This document shows positions 1,517 through 47,500 of a stretch of DNA of 64,000 bases, piece after piece. Source of the DNA: Octopus bimaculoides. Lineage: Eukaryota. How positions within the stretch are numbered: position 1 is the stretch's first letter; each line of letters opens with the position of its first letter. The DNA lies in assembly GCF_001194135.2 (NCBI RefSeq), contig NC_068982.1, forward strand, positions 45,359,503 through 45,423,502. The letters are read 5' to 3'. The position numbers and the translations under genes are program-made. The notes beneath the pieces were generated by a model, which was not told where the DNA came from, searched no databases, and saw only the letters and a list, made by a program, of their open reading frames with translations.

Positions 1517-1674
1517 CACCGAATACATGATGTTCATGCCAAAAGTCTTCCGATGCGATGAAAATGAATCAGTCCTACTGCAATTCTTCGACTATTATAA
1601 CTTATGTGTGCAAATAGAGTTACTTGATGTTAAGACCGAAAAAATACTGAAGAAATATTTGAAAGTATTTGAGG
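1517..1674 (+). CDS. Exon A (MG1 N-part): TEYMMFMPKVFRCDENESVLLQFFDYYNLCVQIELLDVKTEKILKKYLKVFE
   Basis: tag acceptor at 1514-1516 (phase 2); donor G|gtaagt after 1674 (phase 1). Y-x-x-x-x-P-K-V-x-R matches the start of MG1 in C3/TEP. Confidence 0.85.
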
Positions 1675-6775: not shown

Positions 6776-6809
<34 letters not shown>

Positions 6810-12800: not shown

Positions 12801-15800
12801 GCCAGGAACCAAACGAAAGAGGTAGAACAGAATGTAAACAAGAGCATCGGTTGGGATATTTTCCATATTTTCCAAGTTAATAAATGTGGGGATTTTGTGG
12901 AGTCAGCACATCAAACCAAAACAGTGGCAAAACGGGATTCTTATGTTTTATCATTTACTTGTTTCAGTCATTGGACTGTGGCCATGCTGGGGCACTGTCT
13001 CGAAGGGGTTAGTAAAATAAATTGATCCCAGGACTACTTTTTTTTTAAGAGTGGTAATTATTCAACCCATACTAGCATGGAAGGTGGACGTTAAACAATG
13101 ATGATGATGATGTGATGGTCCATATTGTCACTTAGTTGTCTGATTGCCATATAGCTTGGCATATTTAACAATTCATAGCTTTTAATTTGTGATTGTGGTT
13201 AGGTGGGAACTGGATTATTTGGTCTGACTGCATGCTGCTTCCAAATAAAACCAACTACAATATTCAGATCATATTAGCATGTATATTTACAAACTGATGT
13301 TACAATTAATTTACAATACCAGTAGCTGGTGTGTAAGAATGCATGCTTGGCAAGAGGTGAAAGTGATATGTGTTTGTGCTTGGCAAGAGGTGATCTTTCT
13401 AACATGAGGCTGGAGTGGCAATGCTGTCAGCTAACCAAGAAAATCTCTCTGAATCCTCTGCCTTGTGCATCTTAATTTATAACCATGATTTCTTTGTGAA
13501 ACTGCTTGGACTTTTCCATTAGTCTTTACAATACACAAATGTATCAATAATGACTGGCTGAATAATGGGCCAAGATCACCGAATGAGGATAGTCACCACC
13601 AAATATGGAAACTTGATGCACTGTGACCTCTGCTCATTACTGAACTGGCAAGGTTTTGAATGCTGATTACTGCTGTGTGTTTGTCTTCTGTGCATAGTTG
13701 CAATTGGTTGTATAATGTCTTTTACCAGCTGAATCGCTAAACTGACAGATAAAAGATGGTGTCCATTTCTGTGAAACTTGTGTCTGTTTACATATGATGT
13801 GTGTGAAACATCACTAAACAAAAGATATGATGTCCAGTTACCATTGTTGGTAAACCCTTCTAATCGCTCCTTACTGGAGAATATCCAACATATAACAAAA
13901 CTAATAATCATGATAATCATACTTCCTGGGATATATTTATTACAAGTGAATACTAACTGTAGGTTTAGGACTTAAATCAACTGTTAAACTTTATTCTACA
14001 ACTTGACTTTCAGTAATAAGATGCAGGATTTTTGGGGGGATTTTTTTTTCAGTAAAAGTAAAAGTATGTGCAGAAAAAAAAAAAAAAAACCCAAATAAAA
14101 ATGTAAATTGCTCTCTTTTAAATTTATTCAACACATAACATTTGTTGAGGGAATCATTTTAATTAACCAAAAAAATAAAAGAAAGAAAAAATACAAAAAT
14201 ACCCCAAAATGGAATTTGAATGTTTGATTTGGGAGAACTTGTAAGATAAGTAGAGGTCATAATTTGGGGCAGCGATTTTAAGTCAACCTGATTATAACAT
14301 TTATTTATTCTGAATGGAAGAATAGCAAAGTTAGCTTTAATAAAATTTAAATTTAGAATGCTATAGGATGTGACTAAATATCTCATAGCAGCCTTTTAGC
14401 AATGTCATAGTAAGAGATAAAGTGCTGTTGAGAGTCAACGTCACCATTTATTTTTTGGGAGGCTGATAAAATTCTAATGAAGTATTGCTGTTATATAATG
14501 TGCTTTCAATTCAATTCTGGGGACTGGTATTTATGCTAAAAATCCTCGTTATAAGATACAAGTAACTTTAAACAACCTTTTTATAAGTGAAACTCATGTA
14601 TTTGTGTACTATAAAGAAAAGAGCATAAGAATTCAACTTAATTATTTTCTCCTTCTTTTTTCAGTAACAATACGCATATTCCTTTTAAATGAAACAATGC
14701 ATATTAACAAGTACCAAGTGCTGGTAACTTTAAAGGTAACTATCTTAAATTAGTTTCTAATGTTGTTTGTTATTTTGGGCAATTGTCAATTGAGTTTTGT
14801 TTGAAATGTTAACTTTTTACGTTTTTATTTAATGTGACCAATGCAATTTAAATTCTTGGACAATGAACTACTGACATTACTTCTTTTTCCAAGAAAAACA
14901 ACATAGAACACATGCACAAGTCAGAATTACATAGCGTAATTAAGGAGAGGATTAACCTTTACGAGGTACAAATCAACTTTGTTTCAGGAAGAAGTACTGC
15001 TGTTGTTGTCTCATTAGTGAGACAACTGTCTAGCATCTGTTGATATGGTGAAGACTTGACAGAGTTCCGTGCTCTATATTCTGGTGGTCACTAAGGGAAC
15101 TAGGAATTGTTTATTTTTAGAATTACATTGTAGGGTAGGTTTGAGAGGCCAAATTTGGCTAGTTTGAACATAAAACAGGGAGAATATTTGGGCCAGATAT
15201 GACCGATTTAAATGCTAAAGTGTTAAAAAATGTTGTCATGTGATTGGGGTAGTTTTGGTTAGTGATCCTCAAATTAATGAATACTAGCCCCCACACAACT
15301 AAAATATTAAGGAAATACTTTGCCTATCCCTGCCAATTATTAATGAGAAGATAAAATAAATTTTGCATCTATATACTTCTTAAGATTATTAAAGATAGTA
15401 ATTTATGCCATTCCTTTTCAATCTTTACAACATCCCATTCCTTGTCCCTTACCATGGGAAACGCTGGTTGAGGTCACTATACACAGTTTATTCATGATTT
15501 TTAAAAATTCGATGTGACAGATGACATGTAGTGCCTAGAGCAATAGGTGTAAGTTAAAGCATCCAGAAATGGTGATGGAAGATTGAGATTGTGAAGAAGT
15601 GCATATTCTAAATAACATATGTTTTCAAGCTTTAAAAAATATGAAAAATGTGATAAGATTTAAGGATGACATCAAATTTAGCTGGAATGGTTATGTAATC
15701 AAAATGGATTTTTTTTTAATGAAATTAGTTTTTAGTAACTAGGTACAGGCATGACTGTGTGGTTAAGAAGCTTGCTTTGCAACCACATGGTTTTAGGTTC

Positions 15801-15951: not shown

Positions 15952-16620
15952 AAGTTTGTATTAGTCCCACACACTGCTTGACAACTGGTGTTGGTTTATT
16001 TATGTCATTGTAACTTAGCAGTGCCCCAGTATGGCTACAGTCCAATACCTGAAATAAGTAAAAGATGAAGGATAAATCACTGACACCATAATTATAAATT
16101 TTTGGTGCCTTTTGATGTCAAGAAAGACTCAGTTATCTCAAGCATTTCAACAAGCAAATGATAAATTCCATCCTTAACTTCCTTATATTTCAATTTTGCA
16201 CAATAAAGGCAGCATTATTTGTTTTAGCCAGTCTACATTTCTCAGTTAAATGTTTATCATATAAAAATATTATTTTAAAATATCACAAAGAATAAATTAT
16301 TTTGTCTAAATTATATGAAAGTGTGATATAAAACTTTCCCCAAAAATATATGTTTTGGAATTTCTATTTTATTTTTTAAATATTTATTTTCAGGATCCAT
16401 CTAATACTGCAGTTTATTCGAATATTTTTTATGAAACTTCTCCATATTTAAGACTAGCTTATTTGTTGAACTCATCGGCCCCGTTTGGTCTTTGGACTGT
16501 TTCTGTGAAATATCTTGGAAGACATCTTGAGGTAAATAAACTTTTCTCTTATTTCTTCTTCAAAATACAAGGTGGGCCTAAAGTCATGCACCAAACGTTT
16601 TCCATTTTATTTATATTACC

Positions 16621-22081: not shown

Positions 22082-25000
22082 TTGTGTGTTTGTCTCTCCA
22101 ACATCGCTTGACAACCAATGCTGGTGTGTTTATGTTCCCGTAACTTAGTTGAAAATTTTTTTGGCCAATGACCACTTCATGGATCCTAAGTAGTGCATGT
22201 GTAAAATCTGAATGAAATTGGTTGGGTACTTCTTGAGTTTTAGTGATGCACACAGACAGACAGACACACATTCTCAGTTTTATATATATAGATTAATATC
22301 GTTTTGATATTAATGAATTTTGATATCGTGAATTATCTCATAGCTTTGAGTTTTCAATGATGTGATTGTTCATTTTTAGAATGAAATTGTAGGGTAAATG
22401 TGAGGGGCTTTGGCCAGTTTGAACATAAAATAGGTAGAATATTTTGACTGGATATGGATGGTCTAAATGCTAAAAGAGTTAAAGAATAATGGAATGTATC
22501 TTAGAAATAAATAAATACATTTTTTTAATAATAATTGAAAGAGAAATGCATATAAGGTATTTTATTATACAGTAGTCCATTTTAACCCTTCAGTACTCAG
22601 ATTATTCTGTCAAATGTAATGTTTATGTATATTGTTTTGAATCAATCATGTATTTTCTTGTAGCATCAAGATTTCAGTGATGTGAGTGTATATATTTAGG
22701 TTGACAATACAGGGTAGGTGTGAGAGGCCGGAAATAGCCAGTTTTAACGTAAAACGTATAAAATATTCAGGCCAGATATGGTCAGTTTAAATTCTAAATG
22801 GTTTTCAAAAGGGCCAAAATCTACCCTGACCTGCTATAGAAGAGTTCTCAGCTGGAAAAAAAGAACACTGCTGTCTTCCTCAATGCACATGGAAACCAAG
22901 GCTTATGAAAGAACTTAACAAATCAATCTGTTATTTAGCAAAAAAAGTAGATTGCTTTAACAATTAGCACATATATGTATGTATTCATTAGTTTTCTTAT
23001 TAATTTATAAGGTATTTTCTATTTTAGTTACTTAAAGAAAAGAGTTCAACGTTTATGGTTCAAGAATATAGTAAGTATAATTTGTTGCCTTCATCAATTC
23101 TGTGACTAAATTAAAATAAGTAGATATAGTAATTAGAATTAGGCATTTAAACAACCATATGTTCATATATGTGCATGTCATCTACATTTGTGTAACAGAA
23201 AACTACAGTAAGCATAAGATACAGTGTGAAATATCAGATAAAAATGTTTCAAAGTGTTACCTCTCAGTGAAGATACTCTTATCCTATTTTCACAGCCCAG
23301 GTTAACTTCAGCAGACCCACAATATGAGAATTTTCCATTAAATGCTTCATAATGAACTAGTGCTACAATACACCTGTTTTTCTGGTGATCTGTGTTGGCA
23401 AGAAATATATTAAATGAAAAAAAGTGGCAGAAAGAATACAGAAAAATTGCTGTGGGGAATGGAATATCCAACATTGTGGACAGAGTTGTTTTTCAAGGTG
23501 AAGTTGACAGAAGGAAAATGAAGGATTGCAGAGTTTCAGAGGATGTAAAAGTTTATTGTCTTTCTTTTATGGCCCTCCCATCAGCTTTACTCTGAAGAAA
23601 GTCTCTGTTCAAAATTATTTTAAATATTCTATCCCTATGGTGATTTCACTGTACTCTTTTTATGGCATTTTCTAAATCGGTAACAGTAGTAATGAAGCAA
23701 TTTTCAGTCCAATGCATTATCCAGTGCTTGGAAATAAAAAGCATTTAATAAACACATGTAGTATGTGAATTTTATGTAAGCAAGCAATGTTTCATGCACC
23801 CTAGCCTACAGTAATTAACTGATTGTTAATGTTGGAGATATTTTTGTGTTTGTGCATATTTTAGAGAGTTTTAGGAGCTGTTGTTGAGAAATGTTACGTA
23901 TTTATACATGGTTATATGGTTAACAAGTTTGTTTTGTGGCCAAGTGGTTTTGAGTTGAGTCCCACTGCACATCACCTTTGGCAAGTGTCCACTACTAGCC
24001 TTGAGTCAACCAATACTTTGTGAGTGAATCTGGCAGATGAAAACTGTGTGGAAGCCCTTTGTGTTTCATATACATGTGTGTGTATGTATATGTATATATG
24101 TATGTGTGTATATATATGTACGTGTGTGTAAGTATATATGTGCGTGTGTGTGTGCATGTGTATGTATGTGTGTGGGAATGTGTTTTTGTATTTGTTTCCC
24201 TCCTCCTACTATTACTTGACATCCTGTGTTAGTTTGTTTTCATTTTCATAACTTACAACATGGCAAAAAAAAAAAATCTACTGATAGAATAAATACCAGA
24301 CTTAAAAAAGAGTACTGGGATTGATTTCTTTGACTAAACCCTTCAATGCAGTGCCCCAGTATGGTCGCAGTCCAATGATTAGAACAAGAAGAGATTCGAG
24401 TATTTAAGAATAGACTCTGTTATTTACAGTCTACTCCTACAATAGATATTTTGGAACAGCACAAGCTAAACTAAGATAAGATTATCATTAATTGTATCTC
24501 TTTCCTATGAATATTAGCCACTACAGCAAACACAGGCATGACTAACTTTACTTTATAGTTATGAAATCCTCAATTTGATCCCACTGTGGAGTGCAGCCTC
24601 AAGTAAACCCAAATCTTATGAGTGATAGTGGGTTGGCAGAAATTATGTTATTTTATTATAATTTAGTTTTTTTTCCACTTTAAGTTGTACCAAAGTTCCA
24701 ACTTGAGATTAATACAGAACCAAAGCTTATTGCAGAAGACACTGATGTTGTAAATGTGGCAGTATCTGCAAGGTAAGTTATTAATTAAACTTTTTCCATC
24801 TTCTAGTCTTGAGCAGAAGTGGTACCTGTGGCCATTCACTGGGCCTTCGGACCTGTGGGATGGAAGAAAGATGGGTTCCTTCACCCTTTAGCATTCAGAT
24901 TATTCTGTTAAATGTAATACTTATTAATTCAAATTGTTTTAAATTAATCATGCATTATCTCATTGCTTCAAGATTTTGATGATGTGATTGTTTAGTTTTA

Positions 25001-28000
25001 GAATGACATTGTAGCGTAAGTGTGGCCATTTGGAACATAAAGCAGATGGAATATTTTAACTGGATATGGCCAGTTTAAATGCTAGAGTTAAATCAGAAAC
25101 CTTGCTTAAATGCTTGCAACAGAATGGTCTTTGCTAAAGGTTTCCATGTTGCTCTACTGTGCCGTTAGATCACATGATGCATTAAATTTGTCATATAAGT
25201 AGGCTATAGATCATGGAGACAGTGATAAATAATTGAGACCTTTGGTGGTATACCATGCTTGAGAAGACCTGTCAAGCCATGTGAGATTGTAGTCATTCAT
25301 GGCCGATGCTGGTGTTGCATAACTGGCATGTAAAAAGCACCCACTACACTCTTGGAGTGGTTGGAGTTAGGAGGAGCATCCAGCCATAGAAACCATGCCA
25401 AATCAGATTGGAACCTGGTACAACTCTCCAGCTTACCAGTTTTTAGTCAAAATGTCCAACTCATGGCAACATGGAATATGGATGTTAAATGATGATGATA
25501 ATAGATTTGAACTCAGAAAGCCAAAACAAATACTGCCAGACATCTGCTTTGACTTTTTTTACAGCTCCATCAATCTGTCATCTTGGATCATACTTTTTAT
25601 GCATCTCAAAAGGATGAAATGTAAAGTTGACCAAAGCAGAATTAGAACTCAGAGAACAGAGATTCTGTACAAGTGACACAAAATATTCTATCTAATGCTC
25701 TTCTTTTTTTTTTTTTGTGCCTGTTTATCAGCTAATAGTCAAATTGTATCTGTTTTGTGCCAGACTTTGTAAATATCTGACCATCTCTGTTTCTCATTTT
25801 TTTTTCATTCTAGCTTTATACTTTCTCTTTCTTACTCTCATTCTCTCTATTCTCCTCTCCTTTCCCACCATTACATAAATATATGGTGGATTCTCTTAAC
25901 ATAGAAGACAAATGATAGTTCCTGCAATTTCTTGTTGAACAACCTGCACAGACTTGTTTATAGTGAACAAATATTTGTGCTGCATATCAGCTCATTCTCA
26001 CCACCAAATCAACATTTTCCTTGCATGCATGCATAGTGTACCACCTGTTAGAGCCAGATGTTGAAGTGATTGCAGAGCAATATTAAATGGAAAGGTTTGC
26101 TTAAGAACACAATGCACCACCCATAAGTACTAGACTTTAAAAATCAGTACTGAGGACAATTTATTTGACCAAATCCTTCAAGGCTGTGCCCCAGTATGGC
26201 CACAGTCCAAGGACTGAAACAAGTAAGAGACAAAAGACAAGCATTTTCTCTAAAACTCTAATGAGTTAGTTAATCTACCAATAACTACTGGGATCATTGC
26301 TATCAATGATTACATACACCTGTTGATATAGCAGTATGCTAATTACTGGTTGACTGAGAAAAATTCAGTTAATTTAATCCTTAAACCACTCTCATCATCA
26401 TCATTTAACATCTGCATTCCAAGCTGGCATGGGTTGGATGGTTTGACAGGAGCTGACCTGGCAGAAGACTGCACCAGACTTCTGTGTCTGTTTTGGCAGA
26501 GTTTTTATGGCTAGATGCCCTTCCTAACACCAACCACCCAGCAGAGTAGACTGAGTGCTTTTTATGTGGCACAAGCACAGGTGAGGTCAGTTTTGGCATG
26601 GTTTTTATAGCTGGATGCCCTTCTAAACACCAACCACTTTACAGTGTGGACTAGATGCTTTCTAAGTAGCAGTCCATGCAATTTTACATCGCTGATATGC
26701 TTTGAATGTAAATGTAGTTCACTCTTTTATCAGGAGAGATTTATTATATATTTACAATTTCACCCTGTTTTCAGTTGATAAATTGTACAAAATAATGATT
26801 TTTATATATTTCAGATACATGTACAATAAACCAGTAGTTGGCCAGGTGTATATGGAAGCTAGTTATGGCAGAAGTTACTTTGATTCAATGCAGGTAAAGT
26901 GTTTTACAATTATTCTAAGTTTGCTGAAGCTTTTATCCATCTACTTTACACCCAACAATTTATATCTTTGTTTGTTTTTGTGTCTGATTTTCATGTATTA
27001 ACATGGATTAGATGAATATATTGTTGAGACTTTGTATTTGCAGCTGGATACCTTTCCTGTCATTAATCCTTATCTGTTTTATAAGTAAGGGATCACTTAC
27101 CCTATACATCTTTGTAAGTGCAAAGTCAGTGGATGATGTGATGATAGGGGAAAAGAAAAAACAACAGCACTGCTTGTTGCTCAGCAAATGTAAACAAGCA
27201 TACAAACACATAAAATGAAATGATGTCACTTCCTCAATGGGTTTTCTTCTACTCTTGTTTTATTCTTGTCTTACCTTACTAGTGCCAGTGACGAAAAAAA
27301 AAAGTACCCAGTATATGCTGTAAGGTGGTAGGCATTGGAAAGGGCATCTAGCTATAGAAACCATGTCAAAGTTGACGTTGGAGCTTGGTGTAACCCTGCA
27401 GCTTGCCAGATACTGTTAAATCGTACTACCCATGCTAGTACAGAAAATGGATACTAAGTGATTGTTGTGGAGATTGCTAGCATCTAAATCTGTCCAATAG
27501 AAATTGCTGGCATGCGAATCTGTCCAATAGAATTGAATGGAAAGTTGTAGAACTCTCCAGAATGTTCTAATGGCTTACTGCTATATAAGCAGAGCTGGTA
27601 GAGGGGCGTTTCTCTTTTTGCCTTTGTCTTTCCTGTTATATACTGTTTGGGAGACAGATAATAAATCTATCTGGAGTATAACTGTGTTCTTCTTTGCAAG
27701 TGAACAAGAGAAGCACAACAGTGATGATGATTTTATATATATATATATTTATATAATATAGTTAGTATATAAGAGTTTATACATGGAGAGGACACCATCA
27801 TGTGGATTCCTTACAGGCTAGAAAGGGCAGTCAAAACCCAAACCACAAAAAAGATATTGTTACATTGTACGTTGCCTGTAGGACACTTAAATGAATAAAA
27901 ATCTCTGTTAACCCTATACCAATGAATTTCACCATTGATGATCAAATAAATCAATTAATTAGTAAATCAATTGACTAATTAACCATCTGTGGCTTGTCGC

Positions 28001-29310
28001 TGGAAAATGCATAATTATGAAACTATAATACACACCGAAAACACAAAGTTTACACATGCGCACTTAATTTGATTGTTATACATCAAAAATTCAAATTGAA
28101 TGCTGCCAAACAACGTACAGAGTCAGAGTAGTACAGCAGTGATCACATGACCACGTATTCTGATCCGATGTATTCAAATTTTATGGTCATCTTGTATTTC
28201 TGGCTACAATGCTTTTAGAAAACCTTTTTGCATATATGAGTTCCCATAAGCAACTTGTCTTAAAACCCACTGTTATGATCTTCAGAATTATAATAAGTAG
28301 GAAGGTATTGAGAATCAAGTCTTGATGGATACTTACTTGCACTCCAGATTGCTCATGGAATTCATTATCAACCCTCTCTGACTGCATAGCATGGCTAAAA
28401 GTTTGTGGCTGGTGCTCATTCTGACACTGAAGTTGCACCCATTCTGGGGGTTGATGTAGTAGTAACCTTTTTTAATAGGGAACCTCTGTGTTAACTTTGA
28501 GAGTTTTGTTGTAGAACTTGTCCTTTGTATTTTAAGTAGAATTGTGGGTTGGAGAATTAACACTGACAAGGTTCACTGGACCTTTGGCTATGTGAATCCA
28601 AAGTGAAAAATCTGGATGGCCTTCTTGCTAAAAACCTTTTTTGCTACCTCTTTCAACAAGCCAGAATACTGTGTACCTATCCTAAAACCTTAGATACATA
28701 TTCAATTCATTGTTAACCTTTTGATACAAACCAACCAGAGACTGCTCCTGCTTCTATGATACAAACTTTGTTTTAAAGTGAAATGAATTGGATAAGGTAA
28801 ATGTCTCCTAAAATTATATTATATTTACCTTAATTCAACCTTTGCCACCTGTTACATTCTTATTTTCTTATCAAGGTAACAACATCTGTTCTTATTACAT
28901 TTTTATATAAAAATTTAAACCTAATATTTAGATTTTCTATTTATGATTTCATTAAAGTTAGAAAATGGTAAGAGCAATTTCAGTATAAGATTGATGGAGA
29001 AACCTGCAAATCTTCACATGTTCCATGTTAAAGTTCGAGTTATTGAAAGCAACACAAGAGTGACAGAATATAAAACTGATAACACAGCAACTTTTGTCAG
29101 TGTAAAAGAAAGTGATCCCAAATACAAAGTAAGTATTACATAAAAAATATATTCACAAAATAATATTTAATTACTGTTTAAACAAGCATCTCCATTTCAT
29201 CTTTCTTTCCCTTAACCCCATAGTGTTCAGATTATTCTGTTAAATGTAATACTTATTAATTCATATTGTTTCAAACTAATCAAACATTATCTTGTCACTT
29301 TGAGATTTTG

Positions 29311-29351
<41 letters not shown>

Positions 29352-32300
29352 TTAATGTTCATTGTCCATGCTGGCATGGGTTGGACGGTTTCACCAGGGC
29401 TGATAAGCTGATTGCTGCGCCAGACTCCAGTCTGATTCGGCATGGTTTCTATGGCTGGATGCCCTTCCTAATACCAACCTGTCCAAGAGTGTAATGGGTG
29501 CTTTTGCATGCCACCAGCACAGATGCCAGTTGTGTGACACCAGCACAGATGCCAGTTGTGTGACACCAGCACAGATGCCAGTGGCATGATGCCAGCATCT
29601 GTCACAACTACTATTACATTTGGCTCGATGGGTCTTCTCAAGCACAGCATATTGCCAAAGGTCTCAGATGGAAAATATGAGAGAGAGAGAGAAAGAGAGA
29701 GAGAGAGGAGAGGGAGAGAGAGGTGAAGAGGGGATGGGAGATAAGGTGCTAAAGATGTGTCAAGATCCTATTTCACATGACTACATATTCTGATCCTATG
29801 TATTCATATTTCATTATTGCCCACAAGGGGCTAAACATAGAGGGGACAAACAAGGACAGACAAAGGGATTAAGTCGATTACATCGACCCCAGTGCGTAAC
29901 TGGTACTTAATTTATCGACCCCGAAAGGATGAAAGGCAAAGTCGACCTCGGCGGAATTTGAACTCAGAACGTAGCGGTAGACGAAATACTGCTAAGCATT
30001 TCGCTCGGCGTGCTAATGTTTCTGCCAGCTCGCCGCCTTGATCCTATGTATTCAGATCTGAGAGTTTTGTTGTAGAACTATTTAAGCACTGATTTGTAAG
30101 TAAATTTCTATTTTTAGGAGTTACAAGATGCCAATGAAAACAAATATTTTGAAGATTTATTAAGCAATCAAGAAAATGGGAATGTTTCAATTGCATTAAC
30201 TCTAAGCGAAAAAGAAGTTTTAACAGTAAGTAAATATTTTCAACTGATGATTAATTGATGATTATTTTCTTTTAGAAAATTGTTGTTGCTACCATGTAGT
30301 TCTGGTGTGACCTGGTCAATCCCTGATAAAGCGAATCTAATGTTTCAGTAGGAAAACTTATTTAAGAATTCTATTGCAATAACAAGTTACCTTTTACTTG
30401 ATTCAGTCCTTTGACTGTGACCATGCTGGAGCACCACCTTTAGTCGTGCAAATCAACCCCAGGACTTATTCTTTGGAAGCCTAGTATTTATTCTATCGGT
30501 CTCTTTTGCCGAACCGCTAAGTTACGGGGACGTAAACACATCAGCATCGGTTGTCAAGCAATGTTGGGGGACAAACATACACATGCACATACATATATAT
30601 ATATATACATACATACGACGGGCTTCTTTCAGTTTCTGTCTACCAAATCCACTCACAAGACTTTGGTCGGCCCCAGGCTATAGTAGAAGACACTTACCCA
30701 AGGTGCCACGCAGTGGGACTGAACCCGGAACCATGTGGTTCGTAAGCAAGCTACTTACCACACAGCCACTCCTACGCCTATATTTAAAGTTTGTTACTTG
30801 TTCTGTTGGTCTCTTTTGCTGAACTGCTGAGTTATGAGGATGTAAACAAACCAACACCACATGTCAAGTGCTTTGGGCTGACATACACAAACTCAAAGAC
30901 ACACACACATACATATATACCTACATAAATACATACATATTATATATAGGTAGTTAGGGTAAATTCCAGCTGTTTCCTCTTGAAGCTCATCTGCTTCTTC
31001 TATTATTACAATACAATATGTGGTCACAGATGCTGCAGTATGTTTGTCAAAATACATATTACATATTGAAATTCTTTCTTCTGTCTGAAGAATTCTTCAT
31101 AGGAAACTTATTACATGTCTATCTAACATGTAAAAGTTTGTAATTCCTATTAGCAAATGAAACATGTGTAATGCAGAATAAATAATTGCAAAAAATTCCA
31201 CTTTTCTGTTTTGTTATAAATAATACATGCTTGTGCGTGCGCACACGCGCGCGCATTCTGTCCCTCACAAAGCATTGCTTGTTCTACTATAAGTGGAAAA
31301 CACTTGCCCAAGGTCTGTTCAGTCTTAGCTGATTTGGTTGTAAGCGAAGCAACAGTTTTGCAATAACAATTTTACTATATTTGTTAAGCTGCTTTGTCAA
31401 ATATCTTTGAACATTATAATGTTACTGAAGTCGTGGAGGCATAATGGCACAGTGGTTAGGGCAGCGGACTCGCGGTCATAGGATCGCAGTTTCGATTCCC
31501 AGACCAGGCGTTATGAGTGTTTATTGAGCAAAAACACCTAAAAGCTCCACGAGGCTCCGGCAGGGGATGGTGGCGAACCCTGCTGTACTCTTTCACCACA
31601 ACTTTCTCTCACTCTTACTTCCTGTTTTTGTTGTGCCTGTAATTCAAAGGGTCAGCCTTGTCACACCGTGTCACACTGAATATCCCCGAGAACTACGTTA
31701 AGGGTACACATGTCTGTGGAGTGCTCAGCTACTTGCATGTTAATTTCATGAGCAGGCTGTTCCGTTGATCGGATCGACTGGAACCCTCGTCATCGTAAGC
31801 GACGGAGTGCCAACAACAGCAACAGTTACTGAAGTGTTATTAACAATCACCTATTAGTAACACAGTTAAGAAATGTCCTTCCATTTAAGTTTATTTGTAG
31901 ATATTTTCTTTTTTTTAAATAAACAGTACTTTTTCAGTTAAAAAATTCCTTTGCTGACTTAGAAATTTATCTCTAATTTCATATTTTGTACAGGCTGGAA
32001 TGAAAGTGAGAATCACTGCACAACCAACAGATACATCTGTGAGGACGCTTTATTATATGGTAAGAAAAATACTAAAACTTTATTTTTTTATACTTTATTC
32101 TTATATTAGTTTCAGTCATCAGTCTGAGACCATGCTGGGGCACAAACTTTTAGGGTATTAGTCACTCCCAATTGTTATCAGTAAAATTTTCTTTTTCTTT
32201 AAAATATACTGCTGCAGAGATTTTTGTTTCTGAAATCCTTCAATGAAACAATCCATCTATCTAATATTTCAAATTAATTAATTAACAAGTTAGATATTTT

Positions 32301-35300
32301 ATTCTAATCTTTGGCTGAACTAGAATTCTATGCAGATAATTCTACAGCACATTAAATACGTTTCTATTCTTTTTTCTGCAATATTTTAATGGTATATGCT
32401 AGAATTTGACAAGGAATTCTATTTTTTGTCTTTGATAGGATGATGGAACACATAGCTTTAGCTTATGTTGTTATATGCTTCTATTTTTATGTGTTGAAAC
32501 AAACAAGTTTAGTTTATGTTGATAAATGGTTCATCCTTTTGTATTGAAGCTCATGGGTTTGGTTTAATTTAATTTATATACACCTTGTCTTGCATGTCGA
32601 AGCACACAAGCTTGGTTTTTCTTCTTCCTCCTCTGTCTTGCCATTTTCTATGCTGGCATGAATTGGATGGTTTGACAGGATTCTGCAAGGTGTAAGGATG
32701 TGTTGAGCTCTAATGCCAGCTTTGGTATGGTTCCTTTGGTTGGATTTCTTTCCGAATGCCAACCACTCTACAGGTACAAGTGAGGTTACCAAATTAACTT
32801 GCTAGGCAATAAAAGAAAGGAATGAGAAGAAAGGGGAACAAAAGCAAAAAAAAAGGGGAAAGGAAAAGAAGGGAAAAACCTCCTTGAGAGAGCGAAGGGC
32901 AATGATTCTATGCAAGATGTTGAGAGACTAGAGTATGGTAGAAGAACAAGCACAGATGGCTTGTCATTGAGATACAAATATTTTTTCCATATCAGCCATC
33001 ACTGAAGAGCATGTGATGTTACTCAACTATTTTGATATATAATATCTGGTTAGCTTATATCCAGTGCAAAACTGGTTGTTAAGATCAGTTGAAATAGATC
33101 TGTTATACTTCATACTTTGACTCACACTCCACCTTATGTGCTGAAGCATGCAGGTTTGGTTTATGTTAATATATACTTCAGTCCTTGTATGTTGAAATAC
33201 ACAAATTTTCTTTCAACTCTTATCTATTTGTAAGTTGTGTTGACAATGATGGTGTTTATAATAATGATGACCATATTATTTATAGCCTTCAAACAACATG
33301 GTAATTACTCTCTTGCTTCCTTCTTTAGAATCTTTATACAGTTAAAACCTATTGTTTTTTTTTTGGTACTTTAATCACCTGCTGCCATGAAAATATGTTG
33401 CCAAAAAATGGAAAACCCAAAAGTCTGTCTCAGACATGTAGTGTTTCTGCAGAATTATACATGATAATCTCTGTCTGTTCAGAAATGCGGCAGATAAAAA
33501 CCTAGTTTTAGTCAGGCTTTGATCAATTTATATCAGTCAACAGCATTTAATAGGGTAAAGCAGAAATATCTCCTTGTTGTACTTGTAATGTTAAGATATA
33601 TATATGTGTGTGTAAGTGCAGGTTTATGTATGTTTGTGTTTTGTCTTGATAGTCATAAATGAATGTTACTGTCATACAATTGGCATCATTCATTTCCAAT
33701 ATTCAGTCCAGTCTATGTAAGCATGGAAACCTGGATATTAATATGACAACGATGACGACAATGACAACAGCAGTGGTGTTGACAGTGATGATAATGATGA
33801 TGATAGCATCAAACTGCTTAAATATCATCTGTTTTCTGGAAAAAGAAAATCTCTTGTAAAGATGGAGCATGTGTTTTTTAATATTTTTATGAAGAACTTT
33901 TGTGGGAAAAAGATCCATTGGTTACCATCAAATGTAGTCACAGAATGCTAAGTCCAAATTTGTGTAGGCATGATACGAGGCTAAGATGTCTGCAGAAATC
34001 TCTATGCAGTGGGAAGTTTTGGAAATCAATGGAGAGGGAAAGACGCCCTTTTAACATCGAGAGTTGTTGTTGTTGTTGTTGTTGCTAATGTTGAGTAACT
34101 CTAGGGCATTCCTGATTGAATAGATGTGATAAAACTAATTTAAAAAAAAAAATTAGGCTGACCTTTGGTGTATGCTGTGCTTGAGAAGACCTGTCAAGCT
34201 AAGTGACATCACAGTCATGGCCGGTGCTAGTGTTGCGTCACTGGCATGTAAAAAGCACCCTGGAACATTGGGCAATATACTGTGCTTGGGAAGACCCATC
34301 AAACCATGTGAAATCATAGTCATGGCTGATGCCAGTGTTGTGTAACTGGCACCTGTGCCAGTGGTGAGTAAAAAGTATCATTCAACTGTTAGGTCTCACA
34401 GAGGCAGTGACAAGTGACTGAGATCTTTGGCGTTATATTGTGCTTGAGAAGATCTGTCAATGCAAGTGAGATCATAGTCATGGCCGATGCCAGTGCTGCA
34501 TAACTGGTACCCATGCTAGTGGCATGTAAAAAGCACCCACTACGCTCTTGGAGTGGTTGGTATTAGGAAGGGCATCCAGCTAAAGAATCCATGCCAAATG
34601 AGATTGGTGCAGCTCCCTAGCTTACCAGTTTTCAGTCAAACTGTCCAACCCATGCCAGCATAGAAAGCGGACGTTAAATGATGATGACGATGATGATGAT
34701 GAGTTTATCTAGAATTACATCATTCAATGTGTCGTTTTTTAAAAATAAAGTTAGCAGCATATGATTTGAAGGAGATTTCACTGCCATTTCTAGCAAATTG
34801 AATGACTATGTAAAAGCTTCCTTGTTGCCTTGAGTTTTTTCATCGACTGGGATTCCCTTGCTGGCCAGGTGGCATTTATATAAGAGTATGCGCAAGTATA
34901 TGCATGTGTCTATATTTATGCATATGTGCATATGAGGACTGACAATTTAATTATTTCTGCATGCATATAGCATCAAATATCTTGCAGAATTATAAACTAA
35001 CCTCTGTTATTTATTTTTAATTTTTGCAGATTATTTCTAAAGGGAAAATTTTGCTATTGGATAAAAAATCAAGCGGTCAGAAAGTTTGGAACTTTGAGGT
35101 GAACATCATAAGACACATGATCCCTACAGCCAAATTTTTAGTCTATTATTTTCAGAACGAAAGGATAATTACAGCATCTATAAACCTTAATGTATATGAC
35201 ATTTGTCCATATAAGGTAAAACTCACATGGCTTTAACTCCTTTGACCCCACTCTTTTTTTTAACTATACATCCTTTTGAGTATTTGTATACACTTGCATT

Positions 35301-37669: not shown

Positions 37670-39626
37670 TTGCACACACATTCATATATGCACACACATA
37701 CACAAACACATATGCACACACATACACAAACACACACACACACACATTCACATATACACACACACACACACACAAACACACACATGACGAACTTCTTTCA
37801 GTTTTCGTCTACCAAATTTACTTACAAGGTTTTGATCATCCTGGAAATATAATAGAAGACGCATGCCCAAGGTGCCATGAGGTGGGATTGAACCTAAGAC
37901 AACATGGTTGAGAAACAAGCTTTCCATTCACTCATCCATGAAGAAATGAAGAGCGATAGTAAATGGCCTGTGAGAGAGGGATGGTGGTTAGAAGTAGGGA
38001 AAAAGTAATGGTTACCAGCAGGGCTGGATTAAGACTCATAGAAGCTCTAAGCACTTAAAAATAATCTTAAACTGGAAGCATCCAAATTAGTCTTGCAGAA
38101 CTCACTTCATGGTGATGTAAGAAAAGGGAAATGTCGTCACATTTACATCAACAACTTCATTGCAGATACTGGCCTGGAATATATCCAGGACCTTGAGGTA
38201 GTGATAATAAACAGAGAAGTGTGGTGGATGGGCAGTTGCTGCAGCACAAGTTGGAACCCAGCGATAATAAATATAACTTACTAATTAATGTATTATATAG
38301 TTCATTCAACTGGCTATAACTCTTCTTTTACAAATTTGTACTTATGTACCAAATTTGTATATTATTTAAAATTATTTTTTTAGATGCTAATAGTATTTTA
38401 AGTGCAAGAATTATTTTATTTACTCACTCCTTAGTAGTCATTTAAAAATTTTCAGCATTTAGAAAATGAAAAGGTCATCTATGTAATTTTCAAAAATCTT
38501 TGCTATCACATTCTTCAATGGCTGTAGTGAAAAAAATAGTTGGAAAGAAATCCATTTCTCTTCAAAAAAAAAAAAAAAGAAAGAATATGTTCTTTGAGTT
38601 GCTACTTTTTGGTATATATGTGTTTGCATATTTTTATATGTATATTATTTGTATAAAATTACTGAAGTTATATTTATTGTTGGTCTTGTAAAAGACTGAA
38701 CGACACTTCTACACATACACAACACACACACAGATACTCTCTTTCTCTTCCCCCTCTCTCCCTCCACACATACACACACACTCTCTCTCTCTCTCTCTCT
38801 CCCTCAGTTATTTGTACCTCTTATGTCTGCATGTTTCATTATTGTTCAACATGTTTACGCGTCTCTTACAGTTTACATGCAGAAGTAAAGTACTCAGATC
38901 ACTCCTGTTGGGTGGCGGGTGTGGGAAGTGGTAAGAGAGAGAGAGGGAAAGGAAGGAGTGAGAGACAGATAGAGAGAGAGATTGATAAGCAGAGAAAGAG
39001 AGAAAGAGAGTAGTTGTGTAGGGATGAGTTTACGGAAGAGAAGAAAGGCATGTGAAAGAAGCAGAAGTATCTTGGAAGAAGATGAGAGAAAGAGTCAGGT
39101 AAATAAATAAATGGACAAATGAAAATATAGACAAATGAGTGGCTGTGTTATTTCTTTACTGCCCACAAGGGGCTACACACAGAAGGGACAAACAAGGACA
39201 GACAAACGGATTAAGTCGATTATAGCGACTCCAGTGCGTAACTGGTACTTATTTAATCGACCCCGAAAGGTTGAAAGGCAAAGTCGACCTCAGCGAAATT
39301 TGAACTCAGAACGTAGCGGCAGACGAAATACCGCTAAGCATTTCGCCCGGCGTGCTAACGTTTCTGCCAGCTCGCCGCCTATGAGTGGCTGTGTGGTAAA
39401 TAGCTTGCTTACCAACCACATGGTTCCGAGTTCATTCTCATTNNNNNNNNNNNNNNNNNNNNNNNNNNNNNNNNNNNNNNNNNNNNNNNNNNNNNNNNNN
39501 NNNNNNNNNNNNNNNNNNNNNNNNNNNNNNNNNNNNNNNNNNNNNNNNNNNNNNNNNNNNNNNNNNNNNNNNNNNNNNNNNNNNNNNNNNNNNNNNNNNN
39601 NNNNNNNNNNNNNNNNNNNNNNNNNN

Positions 39627-41550: not shown

Positions 41551-44500
41551 GAGTTAGTGTGTGTGAGTGTATATCAAATAAAGAACTTAAAATAGGTACA
41601 TCAAGCATAAAAGAAGAAAATTGAAATTATCCAGATACTGTCTGAATGATGAATGACAGCTAAGTGTTTTGTCATTTCCTGTGTCATTTAGGATGTTAAA
41701 CGAATTTAAAAATTTTAAAATATCTAACTCACCAGTCCATATGGTTATCACAGTAATGATTTTTGAATAGTTGAACATTTAGTATTTGTTAATGTGTTTA
41801 GTTGATTCTATTTTTGCTTTTTGTTTTTAGATTCACACTAATAAAATGGAATACCTTCCCAATGAAAACATTGAAGTTGAGATATCTGGTTCACCAGGCC
41901 AACATGTTGTGCTATTATTTATGGACAAGGCTATGGGTTACATTGACAGCCGACCCAAAATTACAAAAGAATTTGTAAGTAATCTTGCTTTTGTATTTGG
42001 TTTGCAAGGTTCTTGATGTGAAACTATGTGCTGAAACTGATATTATTATATTTTGGGAGGGACATTATACCAATAATAAACACACACACCGATTCTGTTT
42101 TACTACGTTCTTCATTCAAACCTGGAACAGATCTGGAGGAGAGAGGGCATGTATGTCATTGATGAGGTCACAAATGACAATGAAAGAACTCTGTCAGACA
42201 TAACTGATTGATTGATTGATTGATTAACCATATGATTAATCAAACAATTCATTAGTTAATTGTTAACTGGTTAATTAGTCAATCACTAATAATCAAAAAT
42301 GTCCAATAGAACCACTGCATATGTATATTATTGTAAATAATTATTTGTTAAAATTAAAATAAGTCAATGTAGCAAATACTTTTCTGTATTACAAAATTCT
42401 ACAGTTTCCTTGATATTAAACAGATGAGAGATAAATATCCCTTTGGATAGAAAACTGTTCTACTTCAGGTAGTTTTTCAGTGAGGAAGATTAAACATGCT
42501 CTGCAAGCCAATGATTTCTGCAGTAATTTCACAAAAATGCTGTGGTTTATAGTGGTTATCAGATTTGCAATATCTACATATAGCTAGGTAGACTTTGCCA
42601 TCAACAGTTAAAAAGACTTAACCATGAACAGTGTCTGGTGGGATTGGAAAGGAATTTCTGTACTATGAGCTTCTCCCAAGTAACCAGACAATTAATTCTG
42701 AGAAATACTGCACACAACTGGATGAGTTAAAAGCAGCAATTCAAGAGAAACGTCCTGAATTGGCCAACAGGAAGGGTGTTGTTTTCCAACATGATAATGC
42801 AAGACTGTAAGTTTCTTTGGGAACCAGACAAAAATTACTGCAGCTCGGCTGGAATGTGTTAGCTCACCCTCCATATTCATCAGATATTGCTCCTTCGAAT
42901 TTCCACTTATTCATGTCTCTGCAGAATAGTCTTAATGGTAAAAATTTCAATTCCTTGGATGAGGTAAAAAGATACCTTGATTATTTCTTTGCCATGAAAC
43001 CACCTCAGTTCTGGGAAGAGGGTATTTTCAAGTTAAAGGAAAGATGGAGACGCATTGTGCAACAAAATGGTTCATATTTGGTTGATTAAAAATGTAATGG
43101 CAAGTATTTATTGACCTTTTTCTTTCCTTTAAAAATCAGCAAGAACTTTCCGGACAACCCAATATATATATAGATATGTATGTATGTCTATATTTATGTG
43201 TATGTGTCTTTGTATTGGTGTTTGTTCCTCAACCATCACTTGACAACTGATGTTGGTGTGTTTACATCCCTGTGACTTAGCAGTTCGGCAAAAGAGGATG
43301 ATAGAATAAGTACTAGGCTTACAAAGAATAAGTTCTGAGGTTGATTTCTCTAACTAAAAACCCTTTAAGGTGGTTCTCCAGCATGGCTACAGTCAAATGA
43401 CTGAAACAAGTAAAAGAGTAAAAGAGTACAATATAACTAAACAATGCATTTTTGGAATGAACTGTACATGAAATTAATTTCTAAAATATAATATATTTTA
43501 TTGTCTATGTTTGTTATTAAACAGCATATTGCTAATTTTGTTCTCTCTATGGATTATAACATTTCTAGATAAGAGATGAAATGCTTTTGAATCTCCAAAC
43601 TGATAGAATGCTGAATGTAAGTTTGCATTTTGTCATTTCATTTTGTTTTATTTAATTTTTATTTAATTTAATTTTATTTTTATAAGCTCTTTACAGCAAG
43701 ATGCCTGTTCTTTTCCCTTTATCATATCTTGTCACCTGGCATAGAGTCACTTCTCTCAATATTACTTCCCACCTCAGCTGAGGGTGTCTTTGTCTTGCAA
43801 GTTACTTGGTGACCCTGCTTGGAGCTGCTGCCACATAAAAAGCACCCAGGACATTCTGTACAGTTAGGAAAAACATCCAGCTATAGAAACCCTGACAGGA
43901 GAGCTTCACAAAGACTTGTACCTTGCCAGCTCCTGTCAAACTGTCTAACCCATGCCATCATGGAAATGAATGTTAAATGATATTGATGATTTCAAAATGA
44001 ATGTTAAATGATATTGATGATTTCAAAAGCTCTGTGGAGTGGTTGGCATTTAAGGAGGGCATCCAGCCATAGAAACCAAGCCAAGACAGACTGGAGCCTG
44101 GTGCAGCTCTGCAGCTCACCAGCTCCAGTCACACCATCTTACCCATTCAAGCATGGAAAATGGATGTTAAATGATGATGAATATATTTTAGATTTATTTC
44201 AATGCAGGCATAGCTATGTGGTTAAGAATTTTTTTTGCAACAACGTGGTTTTAGTTGAGTCCCATTGTGAGATACCTTGGGCAAGTATCTTCCACTATAC
44301 CCCCAAGCTAACCAAGCCTTGTTGTAAATTTGGCAGATGGAAACAGAATAGAAGCATCTCTGTGCGGTAGTTGGTGCTAGGAAGGGCATCCAGCCAAAAA
44401 AACCATGCCAAAATGGACACGGAAGCCTGGTGTAGTCTTCTACCTGGCCAGCTCCTGTCAAACCATTCAACACATGCCAGCATGGAAGGCAGACATTAAA

Positions 44501-47500
44501 TGATGATGTATGATGCGGACATATTCTATGCCCATGAAATGTCAAATAATACCAAGCTGAATCAAACTGTTACTATATATCCTCATTGTCATTTAACATC
44601 CACTTTTCCATGCTTGCATGGGTCAGAGAGAATTTATTGAGGCAGATTTTGTATGGCTGGATGCTTTTCCCATCACCAACCCTCACCATTTTCCAAGCAA
44701 GGTTACATTTTGCCATCACTGGACATGTCTTTCCACAGAAGTGCGGAAATAAACAGCATTGTTTATATGTTGGTGATGCTCATTTACAAGAATCTTGTGA
44801 TGTTAAGACAAAGGTACACACAAATATACATACACACACTATGCACACACAGCACACAACATCATCTACAAGAGTAGTTTAGATGTATTTGTACTTAGCA
44901 TTTCTCATATTCATTTTTTCAATCTTTTAATGTTGAATATTTCAAATGAAATTCATTAACTACTGTTTTTATTTTTCCTTTACAGAATTTCAAGCTCTCT
45001 TTAATTGGGAATAGTGACAAAAAGAGAAGAGATGCAACAGTTGCAAAAGAAAATGTGCTCAATTCTCGTGCTGTTCCTTCTACCATTCCTAAGGAATCTA
45101 ATTTTTTGGTATCTTATACATTTTAACTATTTAACTTAACATAAAGGCTTTTAAATGTACATGTGCTCTTCTACTGCTGATTTACTTCCTAAATTACAAT
45201 ATTAACCCATTCACATTTAAACCAGCCATATCCAGCTCAAATATTCTACATATTTTAGGTTAAAACTGACCAGCTCCAACCTCTCACACCAAACCTACAA
45301 TGTCATTTTGAAAATATATAAACACACCATTGAAATCTTGAAGCTACAAGATAATGTGAGATTAATTCAAAACAAAGTGAATAAATAAGAAACATTTGAC
45401 AAAGAAATCTGGATGTAGATATGAAATTGTAATGTCCCAAACTTAGCACAAATGTTATATTGTATATTCACATGCAAGTTGAATTTTATTTGAAAAATGC
45501 TTAGCCTTTTTAATAAATTTATTTTTTAAAAAATATGACCATAAAAATTAATTCAAATTAAATTATATATTCATTTCAGCATATAAAAAAAGAAAAAGAA
45601 CCATACAATTCTTAATAATTAAATTTCTAAAAAATATTGGAATTAACTTTATTTCTTATCTCTTATTCCATTCTGTTTGTATCTGCAGGCAGAGCCTTCC
45701 CCTATGTCTCAAAGTTTGTTCAATGCTAATGTTGCTGAAGACTGTAAGTCTAAATTTATATTTATATATATATCTAACCTTCATATATTGCTTCATTTGA
45801 TAGTTTTTATTTGCTTTTTCCTGAAATATTTTTCAAGGTGTTTCAAAATGTTTTTATTATTATTATTTTTTTTCTTTTTAAGAATCTCTTTTATTGTTTA
45901 GTCTGAAGAGAAGGCACTGCTCAGGAGATCCTTTAGAAGGCTCCTGAAGCTGGTAGGAGGGAAGGAGAAAGGTATCCTCAAAGTGGAGACTAGGTTTCAA
46001 TGCTTGCAATAGAGTGGACTTCACTAAAGGCTCTTAAGAACTGGTGGTGGTGTTAAACTGGTCCTTGAGTGGCATTAGAAGAGCCCACTTTTAAGCTTTT
46101 ATGCTAGGTCTCTGGTTTCAGGATATTTCTGACACCTACCTTCCTCCCATTAATTTTTAGAAGTCATATAAAATATTTTGAGTATTGCCTGAATGTTATG
46201 TAAATTAAAATGTTGCTAATTATTTGAATTAATATTTTAAATAATTTAAGGTAGTGAGCTGGCAGAATCGTTAGCATTCCAGGCAAAATACTTAGCAATA
46301 TTTCGTCTGTCTTTACATTCTAAGTTCAAATTCTGCTGAGGTTGATTCTGCCTTTCATCCCTTTAGGATCAATAGAATAAGTACCAGTTGAGTACTGGGA
46401 TTGATGTCATTGAATTTCTTCCCCTGAAATTGCTGGCCTTGAGCCAAAATTTGAAAGCGACATCTTAAATAATTTATATCAAGCATTTATGACTCCATCA
46501 ATTTTATTTATATCATTTTGTCTTCTTTTGTTTTCAGACTCGACTGATTCTTTATCTGGAATGTTTTATGATCTAACATTGAGGTAATGTATATTTTCTG
46601 AAACTCTTTGTGAGAAATTGTTTTGAAGGGATATGCAGTTTTTTTTTTATTGGGTTATTCAATGCAGTTATAATACTAATGAGAACCACAGATGTCTTAG
46701 TTGATAGCTCAGTGGTTCTCAACCATTTTCTGCCTATGGATCCCTTTGATTCCTATTCTACTCTACTGGACCCCCATAGCTATTCAATGTATATAAAAAC
46801 CATCCTACTGGATTTTTGTAATTTAATGTTATTAGGAGTTGTATTAAAAATTAAAATATTCTGTGTATTAAAGAAGTATAGCCAATTTATTGTACATAAA
46901 TTTTAACAATAAAATCCTATATGAACCCCGGTTGAGAACTACTGTAGCTAAAGGTTTAATTCTTTAGCATTCAAATCTGCCATATCTGGCCTAAATACTT
47001 TACCTGTTCTATGTTCAAATCAGCCAAATTCAGCCTCTTACATCTACCCCACAATATCATTACCAAAGTAAAGAGTCACATCACAGAAATCTCATAGCTA
47101 TGAGATAATGCATAACTGATTCAAAATAATGTGATTAAGTAAACATTACGTTTCAGAGTTCTTCTCACTCAACTCATGTGGTACCCAAACATCGGAGTGA
47201 TTTGTGTACCCAAGCTTTACCAGGTGCTCATGAAGAATGGATTTTGATAGCTTGTGTATATATATATATATATATATACACACACATTATTCTCCACTCT
47301 TACTGTGCTCTCTACACCTTCTGATTGATTCTTACATGTGTTAACAAGTACCTCCTTGCAACAATGTAAACTTTCATTCAGTTAAGATACCCTTGGCCTG
47401 AAGAGTAGCCTACGGTGTACACCTCACTTGGATATTTACCACTTCCAAGGTTCTGCTTGCTATGAAACATATGTAGCCCAGATCTTATCTACTCCATTCC

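Follow-up and report, generated by a model that had tools for sequence, protein, structure and literature searches.

The window analyzed here, a 64,000-nucleotide stretch of the Octopus bimaculoides genome, contains a C3-family gene that is represented by residues 40-1032 of XP_052832929.1 (annotated in RefSeq as 'complement C3' and formerly as 'CD109 antigen-like'). The complete precursor comprises 1465 aa, with residues 1-39, which include the signal peptide, encoded upstream of the window and with the first part of the TED domain being the last portion contained in it. The spliced model derived from the window maps onto this protein and is identical to the O. bimaculoides protein XP_014770266.1 at 593 of 593 residues, the junctions between exons H, I, J and K included. 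The naming of this gene varies across annotations, where it is labelled 'complement C3', 'complement C3-like', 'CD109 antigen-like' or 'NTR domain-containing protein', the last being the UniProt name of the O. bimaculoides protein. In an exhaustive search of representative proteins, a single-exon query matched an Argonauta paralogue and canonical C3, and in word-indexed protein searches exons H, I and J jointly gave no matches and the TED and A2M exons retrieved CD109-like fragments only.

All exons lie on the plus strand. MG1 begins in the first exon within the window (1517..1674, STEYMMFMPKVFR...; Pfam MG1 weak, 0.0031), and its end is encoded together with the start of MG2 at 5440..5667. 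MG2 continues through 14665..14735, which is orthologous to positions 3685-3756 of the Argonauta locus L001, and 16394..16531 (Pfam MG2, 4.9e-09), and ends in the exon at 23028..23070 (LLKEKSSTFMVQEY). MG3 starts at 24685..24772 (Pfam MG3, 3.7e-09) and runs through 26815..26893 into exon H (28958..29128), which encodes the C-terminal half of MG3 followed by VKESDPKYK (29102-29128) and ends in ...TATFVSVKESDPKYK, immediately before gtaagt. The following intron, H-I (29129..30117), occupies the expected place of an exon for the MG4 core. Exon I (30118..30225, ELQDANENKYFEDLLSNQENGNVSIALTLSEKEVLT), which is 56% identical to L001 11916-12017, supplies the rest of a linker (30118-30174, ELQDANENKYFEDLLSNQE) and the start of MG5 (30175-30225, NGNVSIALTLSEKEVLT). 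MG5 is split by intron I-J (30226..31993) and resumes in exon J (31994..32059, AGMKVRITAQPTDTSVRTLYYM; counterpart at L001 13051-13113) and exon K (35030..35215), the 62 codons of which equal the canonical C3 exon size; the Pfam A2M_BRD match (7e-17) covers model residues 355-479. The A. hians gene model misses exon J as well as N-terminal exons, all of which are real.

Downstream, exon L (41831..41974) encodes the part of MG6 located in the beta chain, and a small exon conserved in the Argonauta model (43569..43616, IRDEMLLNLQTDRMLN) corresponds to the linker (LNK) region. A predicted beta/alpha processing site, KKRR (45019-45030), lies in the exon at 44986..45108; the tail of this exon, together with two small exons at 45689..46583 (45689-45743 and 46538-46583) that lack cysteine, takes the anaphylatoxin position. 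These are followed by the exon of the A2M family domain (PF00207; 48359..48587; Pfam 2.2e-23), the next alpha-chain exon (49873..50103, VQVTLHESADVC...) and the first TED exon (52298..52486), with the motif GSGEQ at 52364-52378 in the place of the thioester motif.

An earlier note on this DNA had claimed that MG4 is missing and is replaced by about 28 acidic residues, and this claim is borne out by Pfam searches, alignment with C5, the canonical exon map and the junctions in other species. Pfam scans of the spliced model and of the full-length protein detect MG1 (weakly), MG2, MG3, A2M_BRD (MG5/6) and A2M, to which the full-length protein adds TED and A2M_recep; in the spliced model, MG1 falls below the cut-off and MG2 barely above it. 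No Pfam MG4 match was obtained for the spliced model, the full-length protein or the Argonauta orthologue model, and the positive control, canonical Argonauta C3, gives MG4 at 1.5e-19. In the phmmer alignment with human C5, query residues 255 to 355 span C5 residues 267 to 472, so that about 105 residues are wanting between MG3 and MG5, and the same gap is visible in a MAFFT alignment against seven canonical relatives. Thus, MG4 is truly absent from this C3-like protein, which departs from the six-domain MG1-MG6 beta-ring of the C3/C4/C5 family.

The cause of this absence is the ancient loss of one exon. In canonical octopod C3, the exons across this region encode residues 287-358, 359-417, 418-460, 461-483 and 484-545, all in phase 0, and the sole exon that has no counterpart in the octopus gene is that for residues 359-417, i.e., the 59 codons of the MG4 core. 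Exons H, I and J have AG/GT splice sites and are in phase 0 at both ends. Compared to canonical C3, exon H is shorter by about 15 codons at its 3′ end and exon I by about 7 at its 5′ end. The connection between MG3 and MG5 thereby consists of 28 residues (net charge, -4), namely VKESDPKYK from exon H followed by the 30118-30174 portion of exon I, and the predicted H|I junction reads ...CCCAAATACAAA|GAGTTACAAGAT... Judging by exon position, and with sequence similarity below significance, these residues are probably what trimming has left of the first and the last strand of MG4 rather than new sequence, with VKESDPKYK being the likely remnant of the first strand and the exon I segment that of the last.

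With respect to family membership, MG2, MG3, A2M_BRD, A2M, TED and A2M_recep occur in the order typical of the A2M/TEP superfamily, and the TED and MG8 regions are readily recognized in the full-length protein (Pfam TED, 1.7e-67; A2M_recep, 2.3e-06). Apart from orthologues, the best match is Argonauta C3 (5.9e-127), the alignment with which extends to the C-terminus. In the orthologue, outside the window, the C-terminal 175 aa align with the C-terminal end of Argonauta C3 (7.6e-12), indicating a C345C/NTR tail, although Pfam NTR on the Argonauta model reaches only 0.033, below the cut-off. To our knowledge, within the A2M/TEP superfamily the C345C/NTR domain is confined to C3, C4 and C5. We therefore rejected assignment to CD109 or the insect-type TEPs, given the C345C-like tail and the weaker similarity to CD109 (6e-55) and TEP1-F (2.5e-54) than to C3 (5.9e-127).

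The placement of KKRR near codon 521 in the earlier note also holds, inasmuch as residue 561 of the 1465-aa precursor is about the 521st if counting begins at the first in-window codon. The site is of the RXXR type and varies among species: O. bimaculoides has KKRR, O. sinensis and O. vulgaris have KKKR, and A. hians has RKRR. Cleavage there would be expected to yield a beta chain of about 60 kDa and an alpha chain of about 105 kDa, glycosylation not included. No anaphylatoxin (ANA) domain follows it: there are no cysteines between KKRR and the A2M domain, and phmmer aligns query residues 481 to 589 with C5 residues 610 to 784. The interval 45109-48358 is free of gaps. The thioester motif GCGEQ, which is present in C3 and C4 and absent in C5, is replaced by GSGEQ, with serine for cysteine, in each of the nine orthologous models. 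With the anaphylatoxin domain and the cysteine of the thioester gone in addition to MG4, the protein does not qualify as a canonical C3.

AlphaFold2, run with a 38-sequence alignment, yielded a model with a pLDDT of 76 and a pTM of 0.70, in which the linker shows no beta-sandwich. Foldseek searches with this prediction recover C3, C4, C5, CVF, CD109, A2M, A2ML1 and TEP1 at a probability of 1.00, with C3, C4b, CVF, C5 and CD109 at TMq 0.61-0.69. The remaining domains are placed as in C3 in the prediction, an arrangement that may reflect recall of C3-like training structures. The prediction for the lone Argonauta fragment, made with no alignment, had a pLDDT of 34.5 and was unusable.

Several other explanations of the gap between MG3 and MG5 have to be weighed against exon loss. 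A segment coding for MG4 might have been collapsed or dropped between exons H and I in the O. bimaculoides assembly, given that the window contains six N runs and that intron H-I, rich in repeats and carrying a (CAT)n microsatellite, is prone to assembly failure. However, all the N runs lie outside 29129-31993, in agreement with the earlier note's statement that introns H-I and I-J are gapless, and the same junction is encoded by gene models of O. sinensis, O. vulgaris and A. hians, whose assemblies are independent. Altogether, the junction is common to nine gene models from four octopod species, the models being predictions, several of them isoform-level RefSeq or ENA models. Furthermore, the orthologous H-I intron of A. 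hians, with the same splice positions, is a clean GT...AG intron of 167 bp, and the chance of an assembly artefact thus appears very small. Alternatively, an intronic MG4 cassette exon might have escaped every gene model as well as our spliced model; the A. hians model demonstrably misses real exons, and similarity searches do not readily detect the MG4 core, owing to its poor conservation. Against this stands the content of the introns. A Pfam scan of the three plus-strand frames of 28900-32100 (with stops as X) returned nothing at E<=10, and 35 canonical MG4 segments, compared by tblastn to the two introns, gave 18.5 and 21.6 bits, which is noise by comparison with shuffled controls (mean 18.6-18.8, maximum 23.1). 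The power of the tblastn search for relics is low, as heterologous MG4 queries also missed the core exon where it is present, in the locus of canonical C3; hence the weight of the argument falls on the Pfam scan, the Argonauta intron, which is in its entirety shorter than the 177 bp that the exon would require, and the repeat content. Interspersed repeats, which occur in up to 28 further copies across the window, make up 74% of intron H-I and leave a longest unique stretch of 81 bp; intron I-J consists of repeats to 53%. A missed exon is therefore highly improbable.

A different possibility is that the gene is a decaying paralogue, i.e., a pseudogene or an incipient one, with the losses of MG4, the ANA domain and the thioester cysteine as symptoms of decay; three hallmarks of C3 are indeed gone together, and the N-terminal domains have diverged. 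Yet all three Octopus species have canonical splice sites and an uninterrupted ORF of some 1465 residues (1474 aa in O. sinensis), the predicted A. hians model being truncated. Moreover, comparison of Octopus with Argonauta over 390 codons gives a pN of 0.275 as compared to a saturated pS of 0.77, with every exon tested, the linker included, conforming to this pattern and the TED exons being 62-84% identical. On the strength of pN versus pS we rejected the pseudogene reading, and decay in general seems quite unlikely. The loss of MG4 appears to be older than the divergence of Octopus and Argonauta, and the gene has apparently been under purifying selection since then. A further suggestion, which concerns the linker in itself, is that it is functional, for example as a helix that packs on MG3 or MG5 and stabilizes a five-domain ring in contracted form, or as a novel site of binding or cleavage. 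Conservation of the linker equals that of the adjoining domains (14 of 28 residues identical between Octopus and Argonauta, pN 0.27), and AlphaFold2 predicts a helix at residues 322-331 (pLDDT ~70); however, residues 333-346 are of low confidence (pLDDT <50), and two lineages are too few to tell whether the linker is constrained beyond the background level, so that we regard this suggestion as tentative and rather doubtful.

Thus, we propose, with a probability of roughly 0.85, that the gene is an old, divergent paralogue of complement C3 that lost one exon, the 59-codon MG4 core, with the reading frame kept, and has since evolved under purifying selection. With regard to the protein, it seems likely that, since before the Octopus-Argonauta split, octopods have kept an expressed C3-derived protein that has neither an anaphylatoxin domain nor a thioester and in which the ring either consists of five domains or retains a vacant, tethered MG4 position. 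In the latter arrangement, the vacant position would be bridged by a partly helical tether; in the former, the ring would close over five domains. The product would be a secreted two-chain protein, and as it would allow neither covalent attachment nor anaphylatoxin release, it might be expected to act by non-covalent binding, by analogy with C5 and the thioester-less insect TEPs.

Our literature search found no account of a C3-like protein lacking MG4, nor of this octopus gene. In every solved structure of C3, C4, C5, CVF, A2M, CD109 and TEP1 known to us, the MG1-MG6 ring carries the rest of the molecule. MG4-MG5 also provide one of the main surfaces contacted in convertase-substrate recognition and by inhibitors such as compstatin. 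A clean exon loss of MG4 kept by selection would show that the ring tolerates the loss of a domain and would offer a natural minimal variant for structural work. If octopods have indeed kept such an expressed protein with a five-domain or tethered ring, it constitutes a natural experiment on the part that MG4 plays in ring closure and in the MG4-MG5 recognition surfaces of C3/C5-type proteins, and it may represent a derivative of complement that has taken on a different, non-covalent function. In surveys of cephalopod immunity, it should not be counted as a canonical C3.

Comparison with known systems brings out both the ancestry and the departures of this protein. With canonical invertebrate C3 (Argonauta hians GAB1607029.1, 1678 aa, and Euprymna scolopes C3), it shares 30% identity (5.9e-127) through the C345C tail, the arrangement of phase-0 exons from MG3 to MG5, the beta/alpha site of furin type, TED and A2M_recep/MG8. 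In contrast to canonical C3, it has no 59-codon MG4 core exon and no six-cysteine anaphylatoxin domain, carries GSGEQ instead of GCGEQ, and is about 210 residues shorter (1465 vs 1678); without the thioester and C3a, it cannot do the job of C3. The top PDB sequence match is vertebrate C5 (4.8e-33), which likewise has no functional thioester, is processed into two chains and possesses C345C; C5, however, retains MG4 and the anaphylatoxin domain (C5a), and its activation by cleaving off that domain is impossible in the octopus protein, where the domain is absent. CD109 and the insect TEPs (TEP1, Mcr) similarly have an unstructured segment instead of the anaphylatoxin domain, and some insect TEPs also lack the thioester. 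Unlike the octopus protein, CD109 and the TEPs contain MG4 (precomputed PF17789 in TEP1-F) and have no C345C, and the similarity is ~1e-55. In the survey of C3-like proteins by Peng et al. (2022; PMC8960428), which covered no cephalopods and reported no loss of MG4, 13 characteristic domains, MG1-8 included, were described as present; the gastropod 'C3-like type I' described there is, like the octopus gene, a mollusc-specific C3-like duplicate in which ANATO has been lost and the thioester is non-conserved.

A gene model assembled manually on the + strand, with open frames, splice sites and their phase as guides, fills almost the entire window. An exhaustive search with a single A2M-domain exon returned two Argonauta hians proteins, namely GAB1607438.1 ('CD109 antigen-like'), which shows 50-84% identity to the window exons, and GAB1607029.1 ('complement component C3', 1678 aa), the canonical protein; the Octopus proteins were recovered by profile search. 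The model is identical to XP_014770266.1 (O. bimaculoides) at 593/593 residues. The current RefSeq protein XP_052832929.1 ('complement C3') has 1465 aa, of which residues 40-1032 can be placed exon by exon on the window; the first 39 codons, including the signal peptide, lie upstream. All six assembly gaps (N runs at 2702-2905, 17339-17441, 37267-37546, 39443-39626, 40482-41357 and 59789-59798) are intronic in the mapped model; from the end of the largest it is 474 bp to exon L, which encodes MG6. The introns hold many interspersed repeats, including several SINE-like families with up to 28 copies in the 64-kb window (e.g., 29210-29534, 29773-30050 and 30387-30948), along with a (CAT)n microsatellite (~29316-29352) and GA-rich simple repeats (~29680-29720). 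They also contain a mariner-type transposase fragment 3' of exon L (Transposase_1 in Pfam, 4.6e-12, 42628-42807), adjoined by a frame at 42811-43086 that has no Pfam match and looks like its continuation.

The Octopus protein matches the Pfam domains MG1 (weakly), MG2, MG3, A2M_BRD (MG5/6), A2M, TED and A2M_recep, with no Pfam match to MG4; as a positive control, the same MG4 model detects the domain in the canonical Argonauta C3 at 1.5e-19 (residues 341-440). In a phmmer alignment with human C5, query positions 255 to 355 correspond to C5 positions 267 to 472, a shortfall of ~105 residues, which is the size of one MG domain. When seven canonical members of the family are aligned with MAFFT, the same gap opens in the window protein as well as in the Argonauta orthologue. 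These three comparisons bear out the claim of the earlier note that MG4 is missing.

The earlier translation of exons H (28958-29128, +; its 3' end reads ...TATFVSVKESDPKYK), I (30118-30225, +; ELQDANENKYFEDLLSNQENGNVSIALTLSEKEVLT) and J (31994-32059, +; AGMKVRITAQPTDTSVRTLYYM) was reproduced exactly, and each has an AG acceptor, a GTAAG-type donor and phase 0 at both ends. An MG4 exon could in principle be concealed in introns H-I or I-J, but 0/6 N runs fall within 29129-31993, as previously claimed, and no Pfam domain matched at E<=10 when 28900-32100 was translated in its three forward frames and scanned as the HMM check for MG4 across the introns. When 35 canonical MG4 segments were used as tblastn queries, the best scores, 18.5 bits for intron H-I and 21.6 for I-J, were at the level of shuffled introns (means 18.6-18.8, maximum 23.1 bits), although the power of this search is low: queries from foreign MG4 domains, run on the canonical C3 locus, recovered only the conserved first strand and missed the core exon. 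The stronger case is made by comparative evidence. The orthologous Argonauta intron (...DPQYK to ELLVAN...) is a GT...AG intron of only 167 bp with identical splice positions; intron H-I (989 bp) is made up to 74% of interspersed repeats that are present in up to 28 further copies in the window, and its longest unique stretch is 81 bp, which gives it the look of a short intron that has grown by repeat insertions. Moreover, nine gene models encode the same junction, and they cover four species (O. bimaculoides, O. sinensis, O. vulgaris and A. hians).

Mapping of the canonical Argonauta C3 to its own locus reveals five successive phase-0 exons (residues 287-358, 359-417, 418-460, 461-483 and 484-545), four of which pair one-to-one with exons H, I, J and K, exon K having the same length as its counterpart (62 codons). 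The counterpart of exon 359-417 (59 codons, the MG4 core) is absent from the window gene; relative to their counterparts, exon H lacks 15 codons at its 3' end and exon I 7 at its 5' end. Thus, ~81 residues are gone and 28 remain between the flanking domains, in agreement with the previously noted replacement of MG4 by about 28 residues; judging by exon position, VKESDPKYK would stand at the place of the first MG4 strand and NKYFEDLLSN at that of the last. The reading frame survives the exon loss because all exons here are in phase 0.

A pseudogene is rejected on the basis of the pN of 0.275 against a saturated pS of 0.77 between Octopus and Argonauta (390 aligned codons), together with the intact reading frame of ~1465-1474 residues in Octopus species. 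The linker itself has a pN of 0.27 and 14 identical residues, and the TED exons show 62-84% identity, which is the pattern of purifying selection across a long divergence. We conclude that the loss of MG4 is real, conserved and no artefact, which confirms the original observation and supports its overall interpretation.

With respect to structure, single-sequence AlphaFold2 prediction was unusable (pLDDT 34.5); when an alignment of 38 sequences was supplied, the prediction for the O. sinensis orthologue (residues 44-780) had a mean pLDDT of 76 and a pTM of 0.70, with confidence mostly >80 in MG2, MG3, MG5, MG6 and the A2M domain. The linker is modeled as a helix (322-331, pLDDT ~70) followed by a segment with pLDDT <50 (333-346), with no beta-sandwich in it. 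Foldseek matched the model to C3, C4b, CVF, C5 and CD109 (query-normalised TM-scores 0.61-0.69, rmsd ~10 Å). The surviving domains thus retain a C3-like arrangement in the model, which may reflect memory of the solved structures of the family. One MG domain spans ~40 Å, a distance that, on general geometric grounds, a 28-residue stretch can bridge; the ring may be either gapped or contracted.

Beyond its orthologues, the nearest relative is the canonical Argonauta C3 (5.9e-127, with the alignment reaching the very C-terminus), and the C-terminal 175 residues match the C3 C345C region (7.6e-12), which identifies a C3-derived paralogue. The CD109 identity is rejected, given that CD109 and TEP1-F score only ~1e-55 and a C345C-like tail is present. 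The segment between the processing site KKRR (45019-45030, +) and the A2M domain lies at 45031-46583 (exons 44986-45108, 45689-45743 and 46538-46583); it contains zero cysteines, is ~66 residues shorter than in C5 and is free of assembly gaps, and the anaphylatoxin domain is absent. The equivalent Argonauta segment carries a proline run, PPPPPPPP. In the thioester motif GSGEQ (52364-52378), serine replaces the thioester cysteine in 9/9 models (four octopod species), which leaves the protein unable to form a thioester. From the end of the A2M-domain region to GSGEQ there are only ~60 residues (50822-50908, 50104-52297), compared with ~80 in human C3; hence the CUB domain may also be shortened in its first half.

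The Argonauta gene model GAB1607438.1 is incomplete: its MG2-MG3 exons lie upstream of the annotated start (3685-10027 of the A. hians locus BAAFZT010000059.1), partly within a separate 83-aa gene call, and exon J (22 codons) is in the DNA (13051-13113) but skipped. Exon L occurs twice in this locus, once inverted (24877-25065, minus; 17718-17906, plus), with identical tblastn alignments, which points to an inverted duplication or to an error of assembly. The O. vulgaris protein CAI9718466.1 (1412 aa) is an isoform 62 residues shorter, without the IISKGKIL... segment, and seems to omit exon K, an MG5 exon that is likewise in phase 0 at either end.

In the models of O. sinensis and the newer ones of O. 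bimaculoides, TEYM follows a hydrophobic stretch that resembles a signal peptide, and the protein is probably secreted. Cleavage at KKRR would generate two chains, beta with ~520 residues and alpha with ~900, and both covalent target attachment and release of a C3a-like peptide would be impossible. Activation, if any, would need to proceed through a cut within the unstructured segment that replaces the anaphylatoxin domain, as in insect TEPs; otherwise, the protein would be a constitutive non-covalent binder or scaffold.

The sequence is already public under inconsistent names, the same gene being recorded as 'CD109 antigen-like', 'complement C3-like', 'complement C3', 'complement component 3' and 'NTR domain-containing protein'; in the literature, we found no published description of this octopus gene or of an MG4-less architecture, and no precedent for MG4 loss. 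A naturally MG4-less C3 relative maintained by selection is a finding that specialists would consider notable. Domain loss among invertebrate C3 paralogues has precedent. In molluscs, the precedent comes from a study that covers no cephalopod (Peng et al., 2022; PMC8960428): like the octopus protein, the gastropod 'C3-like type I' has lost both ANATO and the thioester.
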